Source: Dimorphilus gyrociliatus
Taxonomy: Eukaryota; Animalia; Annelida
Direction: 5' to 3'
Assembly (NCBI GenBank): GCA_904063045.1
Contig: CAJFCJ010000012.1
Span: forward strand, 1,488,001-1,552,000
Length of the DNA stretch: 64,000 bases
Program-made: the position numbers and the translations under genes
Part shown: positions 4,477 to 33,538 of the stretch, piece by piece
Position numbering within the stretch: the first letter of the stretch is position 1
Layout of the letters: the number at the start of each line of letters is the position of its first letter
Notes under the pieces: generated by a model
Database searches by the model: none
What the model was told of the DNA's origin: nothing
Seen by the model: the letters and a program-made list of their open reading frames with translations, nothing else

Positions 4477-7400
4477 ATGGGTCCGCACTTCGTCGCTGTA
4501 AAGCAATCTAGAAAACGTTCAACGCCTCAGAGGCAAGATTCTAGTAATGAGCGACTTTTTCAATCAATCTTCCATAGAAGACCATCACTGGGAGAGAAGG
4601 AGATACATTTTTTAAATTCTGTTGAAACTGGTAATTTAAACGCTGTACGAAATTTTTTATCAAGGAATGTAAATGTAAACTGCAGGTTTGTAAATAGTCT
4701 CGTATTATTCTTTTCCTCTTTATTCGATATATTGTGTATATAGCAATTAAAATAAGAAATTGTATATAAAAAAATTAACTAGAAAATAGACCAATCGTCG
4801 TTAATGCATTAAAGAATTATCAACATCGATAAAGTAATTTAAATGAAGAGGTACGTACCGCAAAATATAGAATGGAAATAATCAACTAATTCCTAATTCT
4901 AAATCTAGAAATACTTGAAACAATTATTCAAGTAATTCACTCAAAAATACTTTTATATATACAGTATATATTTAAACTTTGTATACGTACGTTTTATAAT
5001 CGATTATCGTGACCTCTATTAATAGTTGTTACTAGAAAAATTGTCCAAAAAATATTTGGTACAAAACTCTATATAGTTTTTCTTTTTATAAAAAAAAAAG
5101 AAAGAGGTAAGTGAAGTCTTTCAGTTCATAATTTTATTATTTTCTATATTTTTTATTTTACGAGCTCGTCAAATAGAACTAGACCTATTTACACTTAAAT
5201 ACTCTGTAATCTATATGTACATGATTTAATGACCTTATACGCCTATGCCTATATTTATACACATATATAAAAATACGTATAACAGCGTATACATATATTT
5301 TTACATACTTGTATAAAAAGAAGAACCCCTTAAGAAAGAAACTCATTGAAATGTGTAGTTTGTTCTTCACTTTTCATTGTTTTTCTTTTCTTTTTGTAAA
5401 AAGAAAAGGTTAATTTAAATTATTAATTTATTATAGAGACGAATTTGGCAGATGTGCTTTGGAATTAGCCTTAATTGGATGTCACGAGTCCATTGTTGAC
5501 TACCTTCTCCCAAGATCAAATGTTCAATGCGTTGAAGATGCTCTTTTCTATTCTATCGATACGGATAACGTAAAAATGGCTGAATTGATACTTTCTCACC
5601 CTTTATATAGCTCGGCAAGGATTGATTTAAGTAAGATGGATGCATTCTACGAACACGATATTGATTCACCACGCCCTCGTCAAACTGCGAGTCCTTTGGC
5701 TCTTGCTTCACACAGAAATAATTTCTATTTAGGTAGATACACACATATCTATATATTAATCCATAAATTTTTGATACTATTTTAAACTATATTTCATATA
5801 CGTATACATTATTAATATATATATATATAAATTATATATATAATATATAGTTAAAGCACCACGTAGATAATTAATGTACGCCTATTTACAATTTACTATT
5901 TACTTTCTAATAACAAAAACAAAGTTCAACTTCTACTTCTACGTGGCTGCCGAATAACTGTTCCTCATGATTACTTTTGCGGATGCATTGAATGTTCGAA
6001 TCAAAGGAAGTTTGACTCGGTTAAATATTCAAAGAGTCGTTTAAATACGTATAAAGCTTTGGCAAGTTCTGCTTATATATCATTAGAAAGTGAGGACCCA
6101 ATTTTAACTGCTTTTGAACTCAGTCACGAACTGGAAAGATTAGCGGATATTGAAAAGGAATACAAGAGTGACTACCGGAAGTTATCGAACGACTGTAAAG
6201 ACTATGCTGTTGAATTATTGGACTTGTGTAGGTCTAGTGACGAGATTATGGCAGTTTTGGACGAAGGTACAAGCGATGACTGCAGTAATTCATGTAACCA
6301 TCAACTTAGCAGAGTAAAATTAGCCTTGAAATATGAACAAAAAAGAGTAAGAACTTTTAAACTGTATATTTTAGCTATTTGCTCCTCTCTATCTCCCCTC
6401 TCATTCTAAACTTTCATACTCTCCCTCTTCCTTCCTCCCGCTCTCTTTCTCTCTTGCAGTTTTATAATTCAAACTACATCACAATACTGTACACGAAATA
6501 TATACTGTATATTTGAGAATGTTGTAAATAGACAGAGAGAATCAGAAATTACTAAATGTAAATATGTTAGCAGTTATAAGATGATTAGCATTTTTCACAT
6601 TAACTGGACATTCTTCTTCAATAACAGTTTATCGCCCACGCTACATGTCAGAGAGAGCTTATATCTCTATGGTATTCTGGCGTTCCATGGCTCCGACACC
6701 AACCCACCCCCGTCAAATTCTTATCACTTCCATTAACAGCGTTTCTACTGCCGTTTGTGGCAATTCTCTTCCTTTTATTACCTAAATGCTTTGTAAGATA
6801 TTTATCTGAATGATTTATTTAATTAATTAACATACTAATATTTTTATGTAAATAACATAAATCAATTATTTTTAGATATCCAAGTTGATGAGAACGCCTT
6901 TTGTCAAATTTCTCAATCATACATGCTCTTATATAATCTTCTTAATTCTTGTCTTTATCGCAACTAATCGTGATGGATCTGGAAATCCTTTTCTGGATGC
7001 TTCATGTTCAAATTGTCTATGTTCATTGAAGAGTATAGTGTCGTTATTAATATTTATTTGGGTTCTTGGCATGTTCTTTCATGAGTGTAGACAAATGTGG
7101 AGAGAAGGTGTTAAAAACTACGTAACTGATTGGTGGAATTGGATGGATTCGGCTTTAATAGCCCTATACTTAGCATCATACGCTATTCAATTATTCACGT
7201 TAATAAAAATTCAACAGTATTCCGAAAAAGATAGAGCAACAATATGCTATTTTTTTAATGATACCGATACAAGATCCTGCAGGGAACTTCGTTGCGAAGT
7301 TGATAGGCAATTGAACAATTGGACAGTATGTTCGGCAGGTAAAAGTAAGTAGTTTCATTCACTTGTTTACTATTTATATTGTTTTCCATTTTTATTCTCC

Positions 7401-22843: not shown

Positions 22844-25800
22844 ATGAGCAACGTTCGCAAACCGAGTAGTTGCGCTGGCGCTGGTGCGGGTGATTCGGCC
22901 AGTCCTCCTCCAAGTCCTTCTCCAGAAGAATCTGATGCTCTAACAGCAAATTTCGAAGCTAGTAGGGGATCATCCCCTCTTCCCACTGAGTACTTCAAGG
23001 TAGATCAATTTTTGGTTGTTTAATGTTTTATTTTTTTGAGTAAAAGAAAACCAACATGCTTGTGAATTGATTGCATTGAATTTCTTTATCAAATGTAGTT
23101 GCTTTTCTTTTACGCACTTTTTTTTGTTTTTGCATGAAAAATGTGCACGTTATCTTTCTTATCGAATCGTTGATTAAAGATAATAAGTTGGTGTAGGCCT
23201 AAAACAACAACAACAAAAAATATCACTCTAAGAATTATATTTGAGGTATTTTTCTGAGCATATGTTGCGCAACTGGTCTTATTCTATTTCATAGACGATG
23301 TAAGAGGCGGAGTCTATTGACGAGTCAAGTTCAGCTAACTACATGATTGGTATAGATGCCCTGGACGAGATATGAACAATATGTTCTATTTGCTTTCAAC
23401 CCTCGATAAAGATTTTATAATTTGTACTATACACCAAAAAAAAAAAAAAAATAATACAAAATTGTTATTCATCATTAATTAGATTCTCTTTCTCTCGCTC
23501 CCTCTCTCTCCCCAGATCACCTTTCTATTTACCTATATATCTTTTTATCTCTTAATACATTTCATTATGGCTTTTTTCTTTAAAATGTCAACTAAATTAA
23601 TCCCAACATCTCATTTTATCTTATACGCATGCAAAGCAAGAGACGTGTACAAAACACACCCTTTTTTTTTCCCACTTGAAAATTATTTAAATAAACAAAC
23701 ATGTATATATATATATATACTAATACATATATATATATATACAGTATATTTAATCTATGATTTTTTGCATTTGCATATGAACATTCTATTATTTCAATGC
23801 ATTCTTTTATTTCTATGAGCAATAAAATAGCATTTATATATGTTAATTAGTAATTCTCTTACATCATTTGGTTCTACTCTTTTATATTTGATTTTTATTC
23901 TTTGTATTAAATTATTTATATTATATTTGAAGTTTGTCAATTTTTTCTTATATATCAATCTTTTTCATTTATATAGAAGAAAGATAGTTCGGCGTCCATT
24001 AATATGGAAGGTAGTAGTGGTGGTTTAGATAAAAATCGTAAAGTTTACGTCACTCAACCTGGTCATCATAAGCCAAAACCTACTGGACCTTCTGGTAAAG
24101 CGTCGAAAGATAAGAATAAAGCGGATATAGCTAAAGAAATACATAAATGTAAAGAAGAGAACGCTTATCGTCTTGATTTATCTAAACAGCAGTTATCCGT
24201 TTTGCCAACAAGCGTTAAGGACCTTACGCAAATTTGCGAATTGTATCTTTACGGCAACAAATTGGCGTGTCTACCCCCAGAAATTGGGGTACTTCAACAA
24301 CTCAAGACTTTAGCTCTTAGCGAGAACTCCCTGACGAGTTTACCTGAGACGCTAGCGAGTTTACACTCCATTCGTGTCCTGGATCTAAGGCACAATAAAT
24401 TGACTGAAATTCCGGAGGTCGTTTACAAACTAACGTCACTTTGCACACTTTTCCTTAGATTCAATCGTATCCGCTTTGTCGGCGATGAAATATCTAAATT
24501 GACGGTGAGTTATTTCTTTTTTTTTAATTACAGACGACTGAAACATAACACCATTAATAACAATTAATTAACAGAAACTGGGGATGCTTAGTCTAAGAGA
24601 GAACAAGATTAAGCAGCTGCCCACAGGCATAGGTTGCCTCGTTAAATTAGTCACCTTTGATGCTTCTCATAACCAGTTAGAGCATATACCTGAAGAAATT
24701 GGACGATGTACTTTACTCTCCTCCCTCGAACTTCAGCACAACGAACTTATCGATTTGCCAGAATCGATAGGTAACCTCGTTCAACTAACACGTTTGGGCT
24801 TAAAATATAACCAATTGCGGGATATACCTCGTACACTATCTAACTGCAATCAATTAGAAGAGTTCAATGTTGAAGGAAACATTATACCTCAATTGCCCGA
24901 AGGTTTATTATCTAGTCTGACCAGAGTAACTAGTATTACTCTATCGCGGAATGCATTTGGCTCGTATCCGGTTGGAGGACCTTCACAATTTTGTTCGGCA
25001 GTCGTAAGTATTTTTTTGTTTTTCACTGGTTGTTTGTCGCTAGTTCACTAACTAGAGTTCAAGGTTCTCTTGTACTTGACGCGCTCGTTGTTTGTGAGAA
25101 CTCGAAATCAGACATGTTTCTCTTTCTATATACCATATATATGTCTCATTTTACTTTCCTCTTTCCTTCCGTCCATTATTGATTCGTTTTATTAAATTTC
25201 ATTTCTGCTTTCTCTTCCCAGAATATAAATATGGAGCATAATCAAATCAACAAGATACCTTTTGCCATCTTTTCGCAAGCAACTTATCTATCTAAATTAA
25301 ATATGAAAGACAACAAACTGACGTCATTACCATTAGACATGGGCCACTGGACTAATATGACAGAATTAAACCTGGGAACAAATCATTTAAACAAGATACC
25401 TGATGATATAAAGCATCTACAATCGCTAGAAGTTCTCGTACTTTCGAACAATTGCCTGCAACGATTACCAGTATCAATCGGCCATCTGCATAAGTTACGA
25501 GTTCTTGATCTCGAAGAGAACAAGCTGGAGGTGCTGCCAGATGAGATTGGTCACTTGACTTCATTGACCAATCTCGTCGTTCAATCTAATCAGCTAACTC
25601 AACTACCAAGGGCTATAGGACAGTTGCATAATTTAACATACTTATCAGCAGGAGAAAACGGATTGCATTCTTTACCGGAAGAAATCGGCAATCTCGATTC
25701 TCTGGAATCGTTATACATCAACGATAATCCGAACCTTCATCAATTGCCGTTCGAGTTGGCACTCTGTTCAAATCTGATAATAATGAGCATAGAGAATTGC

Positions 25801-25991
25801 CCATTATCTACCATTCCAACAGAGATTGTAGCTTCTGGACCGTCGCTTATCATTCAAGTAAATAATAATTACATTTCGATTTTTTTTATTCTTTTCTTTC
25901 TCGTTTATAATCTGTAATTTAACGCTCTTTCCCTTCTTTTATATTTCAGTATTTAAAGCTACAAGGTCCCTACACAGCTGGAAGGCATTAA
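22844..25991 (+). CDS. SHOC2: Leucine-rich repeat scaffold SHOC2/Sur-8. Exons 22844-22999, 23977-24504, 24575-25003, 25222-25857, 25950-25991
   Basis: RLDLSK...ELYLYGNKL...[14 protein letters not shown] array, [37 protein letters not shown] and C-terminal YLKLQGPY, all typical of SHOC2. All junctions are phase 0. Confidence 0.95.
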
Positions 25992-26376: not shown

Positions 26377-26616
26377 TTTTGTATATAGTATACAGAAGGA
26401 ACAATCCATCTTTTCTTTTCCCGCGTTAAATTAATAATTACTAAAGTTAAATAATGATTTTCCTTTCACTGATTGAAAAGGAAATTGTATAGACTTTTTA
26501 AATAAAAAATAATAGGTATCACTACAGCGGGACGTAAGTGATATATGTGAACCAGCAAATGTGAAATGTCGATAAAAAGCGAGAAAGGATTGTTTTCGAC
26601 ATTAATTCTATTGGAA

Positions 26617-28788
26617 ATGAGCTTGACGAAGTTTATTATAACTATTGGCTTGTTAGCAAGCTCAATCGACGACTGTCAAGGGAAAAGGGGATTGATTAAA
26701 GGTAAAATATATTATTAACTCATTTTTCTTTTCCATCAGTCATCTTAGTTTTCCCTTTAGTTTTATTTTTTTTTCTTTACCTAATTTCTAGAATGTAAAG
26801 TATCCGATGTCGGATTCGATTATCAAGGTAAGGAATTTCGAAAGACCACTTCCGGTAGAGATTGCCAAAGATGGGATTCTCAGGAACCTCACCCACACGA
26901 TTACACAGCTGAAGACTTTCCTGAATATAGTACAGTTTATCTTTGCTTTTGTTTTCACAAAAAATACTCTGTTATTTACAATTTATTGTGAAAAATAGGT
27001 CTAAAAGAAGCCAGCAATTACTGCAGAAATCCTGAAGAAGAAGAGGACGGCCCGTGGTGCTTTACCCAAGATCCTGATGTAGAATGGGAAATTTGCAGTG
27101 TACCTAAATGTCATGATAAACCCGAATGCCGTTTTACGGAAAAAGCCGTTGAATATAAAGGATCCCTCTCCAAGAGTTGGGACGGCACTGACTGTCTGTT
27201 TTGGAATGAACTTTCAACCTCAATTGAGGGAGTTAACGAGAAAGATAAGAACTTCTGTAGAAATCCGAATGGAATGTGGGAAGGTCCAGGTTGTTATGTT
27301 GCTGAAAATGTATGGCGACTATGTGAAATTGAGTATTGTAAACGTAAGATAATTGTTTATTTGTTTCTATTTCGGATTGACCCTTTTTGTTTAACTTATC
27401 AATCTTTCACAGCCGCTACTCAATGTAAAAGAACTCAGACAGGAGCTGAATACAGCGGTTCTTTAGCTGTCACTAAATCTGGCAGACCCTGCCAAAGATG
27501 GGACACGCAAGCTCCGCATAATCACTCGTTTAATAATCCTGAACAATTTCCAGAGGAAACCTTATCAGAAGTTTCCAATTTTTGTAGAAATCCCGACAAC
27601 TCCCCTGATGGTCCTTGGTGTTTAACCCTAGACCCAGATATTATAAGGGAATCGTGCCATATACCAATATGCGATAATTGCGCCCCAAAACAACAGCCAA
27701 GAGCCTATTTTGGAAATAAAAAAACAACTTCAACAGGTAAAGACTGTCGATTGTGGAGTTTGCATTATAACGAATCCGAATCGACAAGATTTCCCGACAG
27801 TAGTGTTAAATCGGCAGAAAATTTCTGTAGAAATCCAACAAATAACGGTAACGGTCCATGGTGTTTCATTGATGCCGATGGGTCAACTGAAAGCTGTAAC
27901 ATTAATACATGCAAAAGTAGCGCTGTAGTTAAACATATACTACATATTGGGCTGGATGGATTTAAGCTGGACTGCGTTCCACCCACCAAATATCCCAATC
28001 TTAATAATTTGAAAAAAACAGCATCTTGGACTTACACTAAAGCTAGAACAACAATTCTGGCATCCTCAGCACCTGGTTGGTCGGAAGCCTTGTGTGGAAT
28101 GTCACCAGAGAGGACAGGTATATTATACAATGCATGGCTTCCACCATGGCAGGGTATGATTACTTCGATTCCAGTGACTCCAACCTCTGGAGCAGATTAT
28201 CCAATACCGTGCGCATTTAGGGTTCTTCGTGAACACGACGAATATATTCAAACTGGCGCTTTGTACGGTTGGGAATGGATAAAGAATATTGCAGGCACAG
28301 GTATGCCTGGAACAATGCATAAAGATGAATTCTGCAAGCCTCAAGGTATCATATGCGACAGAAATATCACAGAAACTCTCAAAGAGTATATACCGGAAAT
28401 AGTTAAAGCATCTGAAAGGAGCTATACTTTTGCTCATCTAGATAGTCTTGACGGTGCTGGTCATAGTCATTCCTGGTGTTCAGACCAATATTTTGATGCT
28501 ATTGAAGAAATAGATAAACTTGTTGGAGAATTACTCTCCATTCTGTCGGACGAAGTTCTTCTCATAATTAACTCTGATCACGGTGGGGTAGGTACTGATC
28601 ACGGTAATTATTTTGATGATACAATCCAAGTTCCGCTCTTCTTCCGTGGACCTGGAATCAAACGAGATTACGAAATGAAGGCTTCAGCCAGAAATCGAGA
28701 CATTTTACCAACAGTAGCCCATTTATTGGGTATTCAAGCTAACCCTCATTGGGATGGTCGTTTATTGAAGGAAATATTAGACTTGTAA
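26617..28788 (+). CDS. Secreted protein: signal peptide + 4 kringle domains + alkaline-phosphatase-superfamily (type I phosphodiesterase/NPP-like) domain. Exons 26617-26701, 26792-26929, 26999-27343, 27413-28788
   Basis: All introns are phase 1 and internal exon lengths are multiples of 3. Four kringles carry (Y/F)CRNP...GP(W/G)C(F/Y/L) motifs. The C-terminal domain has IGLDG, SSAPGW, DGAGH, SDHGG...[13 protein letters not shown] and [12 protein letters not shown]. Confidence 0.88.
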
Positions 28789-28962: not shown

Positions 28963-30632
28963 CTAATCATCCTGTAAAAGAAGAGAAAAAGGAAATAATG
29001 AAAGACAATCGTCTAAAAATAAATGGGATATTTTTTGTCTTAATTGCAATTAACAAAAGTAATTTATTAAGAGTTAATTGCTAAGCAAAAAAGAGAAGGC
29101 GGAAACAATAAATACGTGAATTATTGTTTAAGTGATAATTTCAAATTAGTTGTATTAAAATTTTGAAAGACAGAAATACGTGCCCATTCTTGGTCTTCTA
29201 CACCTTCCATTCCATCTTGTTCCAAGCCTCTATCAGTGTTAACTTTAGAACTAAAAGATTCGAGAAGCTGTGCAGAAGTAGATAACGTATAGGATTATAT
29301 TAATTAAAAAAAGCTGAAAGTCATAGAGTTAAGGTTAAGTGTCATGAGGGAAAAGATTCCGGTTTTAGCGTCACATGAGCTAATATATATTATAAATATG
29401 TCTATTATGAATAAATTACGTACAATATTTACGCAAATGGCTTAAGAAGTAGCTCTGTTGGGTTTTAGCATTCATTTTGAACACATTTGATGACATAATT
29501 ACTTTATTATAAAAGTACTTGTCAAGAGAATTTTAGTCAGGTTTAAAGATAATTAAATAACTTACTTCATCTCTCTTTTCGGCATCAGTTTTCGTTTTAA
29601 CTTCCGATTCAAACTTATATTTGCTTGCTCTTGGCTTATCTGGATGATCGCTAAGATTATCCATATCAGTCGGCTTTAAGTCGATTGTTCTGAGAGGTTT
29701 GTTTCCACCTTGTTCCCACTCATCAGGTGTCATAGAAGGCTCCCACAGAGCTTTTGTTGGAGGAAAAATATCGTCTTGGAAATATTCCATTTTACGCCTA
29801 GGAACAGTAATGGGAATAGGTTCGATAGTTGAACGCGTAAGGCGTAAAATTCTAGCAAATTCGACAGCCTTAACATTACATTCAGTTTTAGGTAAAAGAC
29901 CAAAACCCTGATGGGCTCCGTCACCTTTTATGTCCGATAAACGAGACAAGTAGGGAGCTTCGTTAATTGCTTCAAAAGCGAATATAGTTCCATCACCCTT
30001 TAACAAAAGTAAAATTTAATCGCTACAACGACAAACCAAAGAAGCTTACTCGGCCAGTTGCGAATATTGTTCGACTATCTTCGTCGTATAGCATCATAAG
30101 CGTTGCCGGCGATACATCTATTTCTTCGCATGCAAGACTAACTCCTTGCAAATTAACAGCATCGAATATAGATATATTTCTTGTTTGTTGCCTTGTGAAG
30201 TTACTAACAGCTAGTTTGTCACCACCACAAACATATTGGATTCTTCCCCCTCGGCTATTTTCAATTATTGCGGAAGCTTGCTGTTTAATTAAAACCGGTC
30301 TCCTAAATAAACATAATTAGCAGGATTATATAAAATCAGCTTACCTTCACTGGATCTACAGATTTCCTTGGCTCATAAACCCTGATTTTCGAATCTTTAC
30401 ACAGGGTAACACACTCTGAACCATTCGGATGCCATGATAAGTTGAAGATAACATCCGTGTGACCATTTAAAGTGTGTGAGCAAGACTTTTTGTCTAGATT
30501 CCATATTTTCACTGTAAAATCGAAAGAACCACTAGCTAAAACATCCTTCGCTAACGGATGAAATTTGATGAAGTAGATCTTGTCGGAGTGATCTAAAAGG
30601 GTAAAATGTTAAAAATAGAATAAAGTATACTG

Positions 30633-30682
<50 letters not shown>

Positions 30683-33538
30683 TTACCCCTGAGGGAAAAT
30701 TGTGGTTCTTTCAAAGTCTCTTCTAGACCCTCTGTAGGAATAGTCCAAATATTTATGGTAGATTCTTCAGTACCAATGGCAATTCGGCACTCATTAAATG
30801 GATCGAATGCGAGGTCAGTAACATTGGAACCGTTGTGTAAAACAGGAAGACCAGTTACTGGTAGCTTGCCGTATTTTGACAGCTAATAAATAGAGAAAGC
30901 AGATAGAATATTTATCTTCAAGAAAAATGATAGTAATTTGCAAGTGTTAACCTCTAGAACAGCTACACAACCTCCAGGACCATTCAATGGGAGAGCACAA
31001 CGTTTCCTGTTAACCGAAAATCCATCACTCTCACCAGGGATAGTTTTGCTTAGATTTTGTAAGTTTACAATATGGTAATTTTTGTGTAATGGTTTTCCTT
31101 GTAAATGTTTAAATTTTGAGATTCTCTGAGTTTGAAACTTTGCGCCGCCTGGCTTTTTTACAACAGGTGTGACATCATTTTTTATTTCAACCTCTGCTGT
31201 TTTCTCGGCTGCCCTTTCCTCAGACTTTTCAGGCGCTTCTGCTTCCATTCCAACAGGTTTTTTCACGTTCTTTAATTTAATTTGAGCAAACGATGGCTCT
31301 AATTGTTCCACATTACTGCCTTTGTCAGTCACAGCAACGGAATGTCGAAGCTTAACATTAAAAGGTGAAGATGATCCATTACTTTCTGAATTTGGCTTTT
31401 CCCTGCGGAGTGGATCGACATGGCGAAGTTTTACTTCTTCTACCGATTGTGTCTTTTGCAATTTAGAATGCGAATTCTTGTCAACTTCTTCTACAGTCTT
31501 TGTAGGAGGTTCCGGCATTTGTTGATTTTTCTTTGTTGGGTCTAGACTTATTTTGGACAATGGAACAATAGCTCCTGACATCCAAGAAGTCGATGTCATA
31601 GATGGCACGGAACAATTCGTATCCGGAAAGATATCAGCATGAAAGTCGTAATACGATTTTCTTGGAACAATGTAAGGTACAGGAATGATGTTGTGCGATG
31701 CCAGCAACAATACGCGATTAACTTCACCGGACATAACATTCATAGACTTCTTAGGAGCAAGAGCAGCTCCTTTAAACTGCTGAACGCTGTCAATAGACGC
31801 TACATAGGGATATTTTTACAAATTTAATAAAGCCGTATAATAAAGTAACAAGTAATAATTATCTGTTAAGTTACCCTCAGTTAAAAATGGATCTTTTTCC
31901 TGAGTTTCCATAAAAGAGATCATAGTATCACCCTATAATATAATAAGAATATTAATATTAACAATATTAAACTGATGGTCAATTTTAATTTCAATTAAAT
32001 GAAATATTGATCTGTATTAAAGTTTACCTTTCCGGCTAGGAAAAGCATATTCGTGTCAGGATCATAGAGTGGAATGAGAATTCTAAAGTGAAATAATAAT
32101 ACTGTTTAACTATATTTTAATAAAAACAAGGATATGGAAGAAAAATAGTATAAAATAGAAATAATATAACGAACCCATTATTATTTCCTGCTTCACGAGT
32201 TATTAGAGGAGAGTTAAATTTTCTAATATCATAAATATTTACTTCCCTTGACCGTTTCTATTGAAGAAACATAAACAACAAATGAAATTAGATAATACTA
32301 TATTAAAAGTAAAAAGAAAAACAACCTCAGAGAATCCTGTGCTTATGGTATAATTTCCGTCGCCGCACCAAAGACTTCTTGAATCTCTGATACCTGCATG
32401 TCCATTAGTTGAATTTGCAAGGCAATTTTTTCGTGGATCAATAATTCTTATTTTTCTATCCTTGCAGGAGCTTACAAGTAAACTTCCGTCTCCTTTCCAA
32501 GATATACTCTGTACTTGGTCGGTATGTTCATTGAACTCTACAATAAATCAGGAAAGTTAAATGGCCACTCAGAGTATATATATAACGTAACAGTATATTA
32601 CCGAAAAAGCATTTGTTGGCCTCTACGTCGTAAACCGATACAGAATGAGCAGAGGCGGTAGCAATAATATCACTTGCACAAGGATGCCAAAGTATCCTCT
32701 CAATCCTCTTGGAGAGGGCGCAAAGTTGTTTGTGGGGGTTACTTATACTCTCGGTAAAATCCTCTTGTGGTAACTTCCATAACTTAGCTGTACAATCAGT
32801 CGATGAAGTTGCCAATAAACAATCATCAAATGGTGAAAAATCGAAATCTGTGACGAATTCTGTATGAAAAAAAAAAGAACGATTAGTCAAATAAAAATAG
32901 AGAAAAATAAAGAATAGAAAAGATAAATAGATATTTTTGAAAAGGATAGAAAAGGTTTTATAAAATATATTTTCTTTTATACCTGAATGTGCCAGAATTT
33001 CGTGAGTGGTCCTCTCTACTTTTCCAGTATGTTTTAGGGATACTACACCCAATGAACCACCACCTTGAATAAATCAATTAATAATTAATAACCTAAAATT
33101 GTCAATATGGGTGTGTTTTATAATAGAATATTTACAGATATGTATATACAAATATAAATATAATAGATTATAATGGATGTATTTGTAAATATTTGGAATA
33201 TTTGTAAGGAAACTAACTCGATGTGTTGTAGGCAATATACTTGGCACTGCATTGAATGTGATTACCAGCACAATTTAATAAATTAGCCGAGTTTACGTCA
33301 GTTATCCATTGCTGTACATAAAACGGAAAGTAGTCTTAATATAAAAGCTATACAAGCACGAAACAATAAATTATTGCAGTGTAGTACGTGCCGATAAAAC
33401 GGTCCATACTCATTAGCAATGCCAATTTATTGTTTTATAATCTAGTATAAACAATTTTATAAATATCGAGGCACTTACGTCCTTTTTTGGAATCTTTGGA
33501 GCAGAGTTTTTAAATTTTGACACGTTTCTCCAGGCCAT
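28963..33538 (-). CDS. CORO7: Coronin-7 (tandem coronin, POD-1 type), multi-exon
   Basis: Start MAWRNVSKFKNS (ATG 33538). Two WD40 coronin halves (FVTDFDFSPFDD..LATSS; PYIVPRKSYYDFHADIFPDT; SKFKHLQG; VPRRKMEYFQDDIFPPT). Acidic tail EQDGMEGVEDQEW|DD-stop. Confidence 0.95.
30639..30678. repeat. (TA)n microsatellite in a coronin-7 intron
   Basis: Directly visible. Confidence 0.95.

Follow-up and report, generated by a model that had tools for sequence, protein, structure and literature searches.

Does the annelid Dimorphilus gyrociliatus encode a genuine protein in which kringles are joined to an enzyme of the alkaline phosphatase superfamily, is the catalytic site of this enzyme intact, and where did its catalytic domain come from? 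These questions are raised by positions 26617-28788 (+) of the 64,000-nucleotide stretch of genomic DNA analyzed here (the window, in whose coordinates all features are given), the product of which is DgyrCDS8898 (database entry P0001, 647 aa), annotated without a name. Kringles are known as targeting modules of proteases, growth factors, and receptors. The explanation that we consider likely for the locus as a whole, judging from the sequence and model comparisons below, is a secreted protein with four kringles and a compact NPP-type enzyme domain, whose two-metal site is apparently active and whose kringles were shuffled onto an animal enzyme gene.

Gene structure and the kringle-enzyme junction

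The gene comprises four exons and three introns, every intron being of the GT-AG type and in phase 1, and ends with a TAA stop codon at 28786-28788. All four exon translations are contained, letter for letter, in P0001, with which the three split codons also agree; profile searches were run exon by exon, while full-length protein work used the database entry. Exon 1 (26617..26701, +; P0001 residues 1-28) carries the start codon and the signal peptide, is followed by the donor GTAAAA, and contributes its last base to a phase-1 split codon. Exon 2 (26792..26929, +; residues 30-74) encodes the first half of kringle 1 (K1) and matches positions 3-42 of the Pfam Kringle profile (PF00051, E 8.6e-07), reaching only 29.6 bits against a gathering cut-off of 34.3 because an intron splits K1. 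Exon 3 (26999..27343, +; residues 76-189) contains the second half of K1 (to 27111), a CHDKPEC linker, and K2 (27127-27339), displays the six-cysteine pattern, and matches the same profile in two stretches (77.7 bits, E 8.6e-22). In exon 4 (27413..28788, +; residues 191-647), K3, K4, the enzyme domain, and the stop codon share one open frame, with two kringle matches (122.4 bits, E 9.9e-36) alongside PF01663, PF01676, and PF00884. K3 (27424..27672, +) and K4 (27679..27912, +) show both the six-cysteine pattern and the Pfam match, and a 7-residue linker separates K4 from the first strand of the enzyme. By the six-cysteine pattern, P0001 holds exactly four kringles, at residues 30-112, 118-188, 194-276, and 279-356 (83, 71, 83, and 78 residues, respectively). 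The signal-peptide exon, the four kringles, and the domain of about 290 residues proposed by an earlier sequence-only reading of this DNA were thus confirmed by the exon translations, the Pfam profiles, and the cysteine pattern.

The N-terminus of P0001 is hydrophobic, with the 11-residue hydropathy mean peaking at 2.25 (residues 7-17), and no transmembrane or GPI-like segment was found in the protein. The enzyme domain contains six cysteines, three of which are near-invariant in the eukaryote clade of its family. The product of DgyrCDS8898 is accordingly predicted to be soluble and, as proposed earlier, secreted.

Since K3, K4, and the enzyme lie in a single exon without a stop, splicing into separate transcripts is impossible, which bears out the proposal that kringles and enzyme form one transcript unit. 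In an RNA library, three exonic contigs matched the gene at ≥98.5% identity; they are short, none spans an intron, and the library is a metatranscriptome in which DNA admixture is possible. In run X2, no contig on DgyrCDS8898 was obtained, although 0.85 of the gene's words were present in the run. The architecture is unusual, and this is the one point that would speak for an assembly or annotation artefact in which a kringle gene had been wrongly joined to a separate, possibly contaminant, enzyme gene. Such an error would have to be reconciled with an open reading frame in which no stop occurs between K3 and the last residue of the enzyme, with the position of the gene on a 2.86-Mb contig, with flanking animal genes that are collinear with those of the orthologue L001, and with a K4-enzyme junction that independent assemblies reproduce in L001 and L002 (two runs), in L003 and L093 (two runs), and in L009. 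We give it a vanishingly small probability; DgyrCDS8898 is a real, expressed-looking nuclear annelid gene.

The orthologue is collinear with DgyrCDS8898 at 79% identity, and the collinearity extends to the downstream flanking genes. Comparison of the two sequences yielded a pN of 0.12 and a pS of 0.73 (saturated), with similar values for kringles and enzyme and no gaps in 457 codons, revealing strong purifying selection on both halves of the protein. Beyond the orthologous source (L001/L002), the layout of four kringles followed by the enzyme recurs in L003/L093 and in L009, the latter as one uninterrupted ORF, and is thus found in at least three other sources. K4 of Dimorphilus finds its best match in K4 of L009 and of L003; K2 and K4 are mutual best matches across the three species, K2 is short and divergent in all of them, and a CH-x-x-PEC linker is common to all three. 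Other searches did not extend this distribution. A metagenome scan with the animal-clade alignment, in a collection without L009's own contig, yielded 80 loci (25-32% identity), all of them lacking kringles; no kringle lies within 3.2 kb upstream of the Owenia-like locus L011; and none was seen upstream of L004 and L010, both of which end too soon to decide. The kringle-phosphoesterase architecture is therefore rare and unannotated but not unique.

The catalytic domain and its relatives

The enzyme domain (27913..28785, +) spans 291 residues (P0001 residues 357-647) and is of a compact NPP type within the alkaline phosphatase superfamily. PF01663 matches exon 4 with 71.3 bits (E 1.5e-19; gathering cut-off 23) over profile positions 2-236 of 342. 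Conservation of the active-site residues was read from three alignments, A1, A2, and A3, the last being the animal set. The first metal ligand, Asp371 (domain residue D15; 27955..27957, +), lies in a GLDG motif, is invariant in all three alignments, and aligns with the first Asp of NPP. Asp536 and His540 (D180 and H184; 28450..28464, +) form a D-x-x-G-H motif that aligns with DE.GH of Xac NPP, while Asp578-His579 (D222-H223) in SDHG and His586 (H230) in the final DHG complete the set (28576..28602, +); all of these are likewise invariant in A1-A3. The predicted nucleophile is Ser408 (S52; 28066..28068, +) in S-A-P-G-W, which is invariant in A3 and, in alignment with ENPP4 and Xac NPP, falls on the Thr of their T-F-P-N-H motif. 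Asn429 (N73; 28129..28131, +), invariant in A2 and A3, corresponds to the phosphoryl-contacting Asn of NPP, aligning with the Asn of GIV.N. Every catalytic element named in the sequence-only reading is present, and the coordinates stated in that reading are exact: GLDG has its Asp at 27955, the second Ser in SSAPGW lies at 28066, D..GH is found at 28450/28462, SDHG is at 28576-28581, and the His of the last DHG is at 28600. The claim of an intact two-metal site, made in the same reading, agrees with the presence of all six ligands (Asp; Asp, His; Asp, His; His) in alignment with NPP residues.

In place of the T-x-P-x-H nucleophile motif of NPP, the domain carries Ser, a chemically equivalent nucleophile to Thr; among bacterial proteins of the compact family, both residues occur in this role. 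The earlier remark that this S-x-P-x-W style is unlike that of the vertebrate enzymes is in line with our alignments, in which S-x-P-G-W is nearly invariant in a eukaryote/protist clade of compact PF01663 proteins. An AF2 model of the domain was obtained with a pLDDT of 81 and a pTM of 0.86, with two low-confidence loops (residues 75-96 and 129-135 of the model). The first of these is conserved in sequence and may shape the substrate pocket; because it is modelled with low confidence, specificity is not readable from the model.

Structural and sequence comparisons set the domain beside several characterized enzyme families. The NPP family (PF01663; Xanthomonas NPP and vertebrate ENPP4-7) shares with it the alpha/beta core (Z 27-29, with about 260 of 291 residues aligned), the six metal ligands, an x-P-x nucleophile motif, the Asn after the nucleophile, and a secreted or extracellular location, but differs in using Thr rather than Ser and is only 17-22% identical. 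Moreover, the full NPP core comprises about 380 residues, with an insertion between DHG and the last His that places this His some 100 residues further on; in the worm domain the gap is 6 residues, which makes it about 90-100 residues shorter than NPPs. ENPP1-3 additionally possess somatomedin-B (SMB) and C-terminal nuclease-like domains, whereas the worm protein has neither and carries four N-terminal kringles instead; the Pfam models that it matches are those for Kringle and for the alkaline phosphatase superfamily alone, and nothing follows its catalytic domain. The bacterial NPP-like alkaline phosphatases PafA and PhoK (SPAP), which head the list of structural matches, superimpose with an rmsd of 2.4-3.0 over 266-271 residues and have the two-metal site in common with the worm domain, but unlike it are 520-560 residues long, with large insertions and a Thr nucleophile, and the NCBIfam PafA model scores just 24.8 bits on the worm protein against a cut-off of 650.

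The domain's own family is a compact 'alkaline phosphatase family protein' group of about 260-340 residues, an unnamed PF01663 subfamily of the COG1524 type found in bacteria, protists, and a few animals. Its members resemble the worm domain in length, order of motifs, and short DHG-to-His spacing, the TM-score between the domain model and bacterial Atlas models of about 307 residues is 0.86, and bacterial members are secreted too. Some of these are fused to PA14, discoidin, laminin-G-like, or hemopexin modules, whereas the worm protein bears N-terminal kringles, an animal-type module. Three near-invariant cysteines, S-A/G-P-G-W, and a P-P-W...I-T-P-V-T-G loop mark the eukaryote clade of the family.

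With this site, two zinc-type metal ions would be held by Asp371/Asp578/His579 and by Asp536/His540/His586, Ser408 would attack the phosphate ester to form a covalent phospho-enzyme resolved by water, and Asn429 would aid binding of the phosphoryl group. The domain might instead be a pseudoenzyme used for binding or as a scaffold, so that the protein would function as an adhesion or ligand protein of five modules. Consistent with that idea, the literature yielded no member of the compact family with a determined activity, substrate, metal content, or kringle ligand, the stem branch to the Dimorphilus/L001 pair is long (1.35 changes per column), and the otherwise near-invariant His of a '.HG' motif that follows the nucleophile is Thr in Dimorphilus. 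Against it, Dimorphilus, L001, L003, and L009 all retain the six metal ligands together with the nucleophile and the Asn, and purifying selection acts on the enzyme domain no less strongly than on the kringles; we hold loss of catalysis to be improbable.

An active enzyme could have a main reaction other than phosphodiester hydrolysis, acting as a phosphomonoesterase (PafA/PhoK-like), a phosphocholine or lipid-head-group esterase (ENPP6/7-like), a sulfatase, or a phosphonate hydrolase. The alkaline phosphatase superfamily is known for its promiscuity, and structural similarity does not separate the monoesterases PafA (Z 29.6) and PhoK (29.3) from the diesterases ENPP7 (29.2), Xac NPP (28.5), and ENPP1, which are tied within one Z unit and all lie at Z 28-30, with sulfatases at about 26.7. 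The best single-sequence PDB match is a choline sulfatase, over the C-terminal third. A formylglycine sulfatase (PF00884) is nevertheless unlikely: S-A-P-G-W is not C/S-x-P-x-R, the two-metal site is rich in His, and PF00884 matches with 35 bits in the C-terminal third only. That the main reaction lies elsewhere than in diester cleavage is a serious possibility, if the less probable one, and is better seen as a sub-question of the active-enzyme reading than as a true rival to it. The ester cut by the enzyme might be a mono- or diester, with a nucleotide, a lipid head group, or a glycan phosphate as candidates.

Origin of the enzyme domain

The sequence-only reading had raised the possibility of a horizontally acquired catalytic domain, that is, one moved from a bacterium or protist into the dinophilid lineage, where it would have become fused with kringles of the host. 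The family is indeed overwhelmingly bacterial (4307 matches, with the bulk of the best 150 looking bacterial), the domain is intronless in Dimorphilus, and an earlier word-index search with it had returned only bacterial-looking relatives at 24-31% identity. This last result was overturned by an exhaustive search, which revealed closer relatives at 36-42% identity; those with names are all animals, namely Owenia fusiformis (two), Pomphorhynchus laevis, and Neoechinorhynchus agilis. Outside the orthologue, the nearest relatives of the domain are thus stand-alone secreted animal proteins, from Owenia and two acanthocephalans.

In the tree, these proteins and the worm domain fall into one animal and animal-like clade (93/83) inside a eukaryote clade (100/96*), and the gene neighbours of clade members are eukaryotic (Tom22, Det1, BRCT, kinesin). 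The base composition of DgyrCDS8898 is that of its surroundings. The homologues L010 and L011, on other animal-like contigs, have introns within the domain, so that its intronless state in Dimorphilus says nothing on transfer; this feature had rightly been called weak evidence. Grouping with metazoan enzymes, the outcome that the proposal of transfer had itself named as counting against it, is what was recovered. Because the nearest relatives are animal and lie within a well-supported eukaryote clade, recent lineage-specific transfer is not supported, and we assign it a very low probability; a transfer dating back to early eukaryotes or early animals is conceivable but is a separate claim. The domain belongs to an animal clade, itself part of the eukaryote clade within a family of secreted enzymes of about 300 residues that are mostly bacterial.

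Phase-1 intron boundaries are typical of shuffled modules. Shuffling of kringle exons onto an animal enzyme gene is the better reading than recent bacterial transfer: kringle modules bounded by phase-1 introns would have been added to an existing animal gene for a stand-alone secreted enzyme. In the tree, one clade (71/74) unites the kringle-bearing rows with two rows whose N-terminus is unknown, whereas constraining only those four rows known to carry kringles to group with one another lowers the log-likelihood by 6.07 units (AU p 0.0475). The fusion probably arose once, although a single event is not firmly shown.

Possible role of the kringle array

The kringles themselves resemble those of plasminogen and apo(a)-like arrays (32-44% identity), with the same six-cysteine pattern and phase-1 intron boundaries. 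In known kringle proteins (plasminogen, apolipoprotein(a)-like, HGF, ROR, Kremen, and lophotrochozoan arrays), the partner is a serine protease, a kinase, PAN, or FN2, whereas in the worm protein it is a phosphoesterase. Among the best 120 kringle-array relatives, PF01663 is carried only by DgyrCDS8898 and its orthologue, and no paper on a kringle-phosphodiesterase was located in the literature. A conserved fusion of this kind would mean a new enzymatic partner for kringles.

The array could tether or target the enzyme to an extracellular protein or polymer. A broader interpretation, which we think less likely than not, is that the four-kringle phosphoesterase represents an old, conserved class of extracellular enzyme in marine spiralians, its kringles bringing a compact NPP-like hydrolase to a particular target outside the cell. 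If true, microbial or mucus polymers with phosphodiester links, extracellular nucleic acid, and nucleotides would be candidate targets, and the protein would be the first phosphoesterase guided by kringles, its defined role being digestive, antimicrobial, or in signaling. A conserved fusion would also open up an uncharacterized compact branch of the alkaline phosphatase superfamily, one widespread among bacteria, protists, and some animals. The protein lends itself to testing how a binding array alters the action of a promiscuous extracellular hydrolase, and it cleanly illustrates phase-1 exon shuffling in a genome that is compact. The locus further provides a caution, since the bacterial ancestry to which a word-based search pointed was reversed by an exhaustive one.

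As a lead only, the lysine pocket of plasminogen K1/K4, an acidic pair after C-R-N-P, appears by eye to have acidic counterparts in K1 (NPEEEED) and K3 (NPDNSPD) of the worm protein and not in K2 or K4.

Gene structure and domain layout

The kringle-enzyme gene is carried on the forward strand of AT-rich animal DNA and, in a frame-1 reading, comprises four exons at window positions 26617–26701, 26792–26929, 26999–27343, and 27413–28788, the last of which ends in a TAA stop, separated by three short GT-AG introns that are phase 1 throughout. The four exon translations are exact pieces of P0001 (DgyrCDS8898), a 647-aa Dimorphilus gyrociliatus protein encoded on a 2.86-Mb contig, and the three intron-split codons also agree. 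Database searches were run exon by exon, and full-length analyses used P0001. Its six-cysteine pattern delineates exactly four kringles (K1–K4), at residues 30–112, 118–188, 194–276, and 279–356, followed by the enzyme domain (residues 357–647). Pfam assigned the first half of K1 to exon 2 and a kringle to exon 3, while the last exon alone returned two kringle units (E 9.9e-36) and PF01663 Phosphodiest (71.3 bits, cut-off 23). These results confirm the four kringles and enzyme proposed, with their coordinates, in an earlier sequence-only reading. The intact fusion it described also holds, since K3, K4, and the 291-aa enzyme domain form a single open reading frame within a single exon and the two-metal site is complete.

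P0001 is a soluble secreted protein, as that reading had supposed, because it begins with a hydrophobic stretch, has no further membrane-like segment, and terminates with the enzyme domain. An alternative in-frame ATG lies 17 codons 5' of the annotated start (window 26566–26616) and is also in frame at the orthologous locus on contig L001, the added residues being poorly conserved. Either ATG may be the true start, and a signal-like N-terminus results with both.

Active site and fold of the enzyme domain

Six residues of the enzyme domain (domain numbering), Asp15, Asp180, His184, Asp222, His223, and His230, are invariant in the alignments with bacterial relatives, the eukaryote clade, and the animal set, and Ser52 and Asn73 are fully or almost fully conserved. 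On the forward strand, the codons of Asp15, Ser52, Asn73, and Asp180 are located at window positions 27955, 28066, 28129, and 28450, and those of His184, Asp222, His223, and His230 at 28462, 28576, 28579, and 28600. When the eukaryote-clade profile was aligned with solved structures, the serine of S-A-P-G-W paired with the ENPP4 and Xanthomonas NPP threonine in T-F-P-N-H, and the domain asparagine with the NPP asparagine; both D-x-x-G-H and D-H-G likewise fell on the equivalent NPP motifs. The full catalytic set anticipated from the sequence is thus present, with six invariant ligands and an NPP-aligned serine and asparagine.

The AlphaFold model of the enzyme domain (pLDDT 81, pTM 0.86) matched PafA (Z 29.6), PhoK (29.3), ENPP7 (29.2), and ENPP1 and Xac NPP (both ~28.5) best, with sulfatases slightly lower (Z ~26.7); the C/S-x-P-x-R sulfatase signature is absent from the domain. 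Bacterial models of ~307 aa, some with a PA14 module, superimposed with a TM of 0.86. Based on the motif alignments and structural matches, the domain is a stripped-down NPP-type core. It differs from the NPP family in that serine takes the place of the threonine nucleophile, the full-length core is lacking, and the last metal-binding histidine is located 6 residues past DHG rather than ~100. The model is poor in two loops, of which one (domain residues 75–96, window 28135–28200) corresponds to a P-P-W...I-T-P-V-T-G stretch that is conserved in the eukaryote clade despite a pLDDT <50, and may represent a clade-specific lid or substrate loop.

P0001 is therefore a secreted protein of several domains in which the two-metal site of the NPP type is complete, and its enzyme domain, which belongs to an unnamed compact subfamily, is predicted to work like an NPP. 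Ser408 (domain Ser52) would attack a phosphate ester to give a covalent phospho-intermediate, in the manner of the NPP threonine, and the kringles would localise the enzyme by binding an extracellular protein or polymer. Bacterial compact relatives, too, carry modules for extracellular binding (such as PA14, discoidin, laminin-G-like, and hemopexin), and the design of a binding module plus a compact esterase thus recurs. Several bacterial relatives (P0150, P0160, P0244, P0257, and P0281) carry a tandem double compact enzyme domain; in P0150 (836 aa), Fn3-associated and PA14 modules come after the two copies, and P0257 reaches 7978 aa.

Distribution and origin of the domain combination

The four-kringle-plus-enzyme architecture is rare but not unique to Dimorphilus. 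An exhaustive enzyme-domain search, whose best 150 matches were then scanned locally for kringles, revealed another cluster with kringles (P0156/P0305), which stems from two additional runs of the SRA series that gave contigs L001 and L002. On contig L003, K1-K2 are followed by an intron and then by K3-K4-enzyme within one exon. A profile search further identified P0316, whose contig L009 has one uninterrupted, cDNA-like open reading frame running from a signal peptide through four kringles to the enzyme. The K2 and K4 units of Dimorphilus, L003, and L009 are mutual best matches, and all three share a CH-x-x-PEC linker between K1 and K2, which suggests descent from a single gene with four kringles. 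Of the 120 best kringle-array relatives, PF01663 was found only in P0001 and P0002, its 79% identical counterpart; other partners include proteases, PAN, FN2, a GPCR, and MACPF. No further kringle fusion was found in a metagenome scan of 80 loci. Our literature search found no mention of a kringle-phosphodiesterase, in line with the earlier reading, and no characterised member of the compact subfamily, and the D. gyrociliatus genome paper does not mention DgyrCDS8898. The pairing of kringles with a compact phosphoesterase is thus a rare, conserved, and unstudied domain combination.

The earlier suggestion that the catalytic domain was possibly acquired horizontally gained no support from the search for relatives. 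A word-based search returned only bacterial-looking sequences (24–31% identity), whereas the exhaustive search recovered closer ones (36–43%), of which those with names are animal: two Owenia fusiformis proteins and one each from Pomphorhynchus laevis and Neoechinorhynchus agilis, all stand-alone (319–403 aa). In a careful maximum-likelihood tree of the unrooted, mostly bacterial family (52 rows), nesting of the domain among bacteria was not seen: 36 rows form a eukaryote clade (support 100/96*), within which the named animal proteins group with unnamed animal-like sequences (12 rows, 93/83), and the bacterial rows and a Perkinsus group fall outside. Gene neighbours of eukaryote-clade members are Tom22, Det1, and BRCT, or else kinesin. 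P0179, also of this clade, lies at 6001–6927 of L007, a gene-dense 191-kb contig that also encodes an Rpb5-type subunit, an mRNA cap methyltransferase, a protein kinase, and many unknown ORFs, and looks like a giant virus or very compact eukaryote.

The kringle rows form one weakly supported clade (71/74) with P0144 and P0148, both N-terminally cut off, and a constraint joining the four known kringle rows alone was borderline rejected (AU p 0.0475). P0144 (L004, 248–1174) and P0148 (L010, 306–1094), both animal-like, are 42% and 43% identical to the window's enzyme domain; on both contigs an intron precedes the enzyme exon and the contig ends before any upstream exon. P0144 is 47% identical to the kringle-bearing P0316, whose linker its own resembles. 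Since introns lie within or ahead of the enzyme domain in homologues from animal-like contigs, its intronless state in the compact Dimorphilus genome is no sign of transfer. Taken from sequence comparison, a recent, lineage-specific horizontal transfer is not supported.

Conservation and transcription of the gene

P0002 is encoded on the Logan contigs L001 and L002 (two runs), and L001 spans all four exons of the gene, with the signal exon and both K1 and K2 present. Downstream of the gene, L001 is collinear with the window, where a coronin-type gene follows on the minus strand (window 29533–33052; L001 3679–5896; WD40_4 and DUF1899 on the L001 products). The last exons of the P0001 and P0002 loci align over 457 codons with zero gaps, with pN 0.12 against pS 0.73 (saturated), kringles and enzyme alike.

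Three short RNA-library contigs from a coral metatranscriptome (run X1) map to exons 3 and 4 at window 27103–27312, 27481–27682, and 28607–28767 with at least 98.5% identity, and none from this run maps to introns or spacers. Because no contig crosses an intron, they lend weak support to transcription of the gene. The coral sample seems to harbour Dimorphilus or a closely related strain. Directly upstream of the gene lies a multi-exon leucine-rich-repeat gene (window 24004–25917, forward strand), which by eye looks SHOC2-like.
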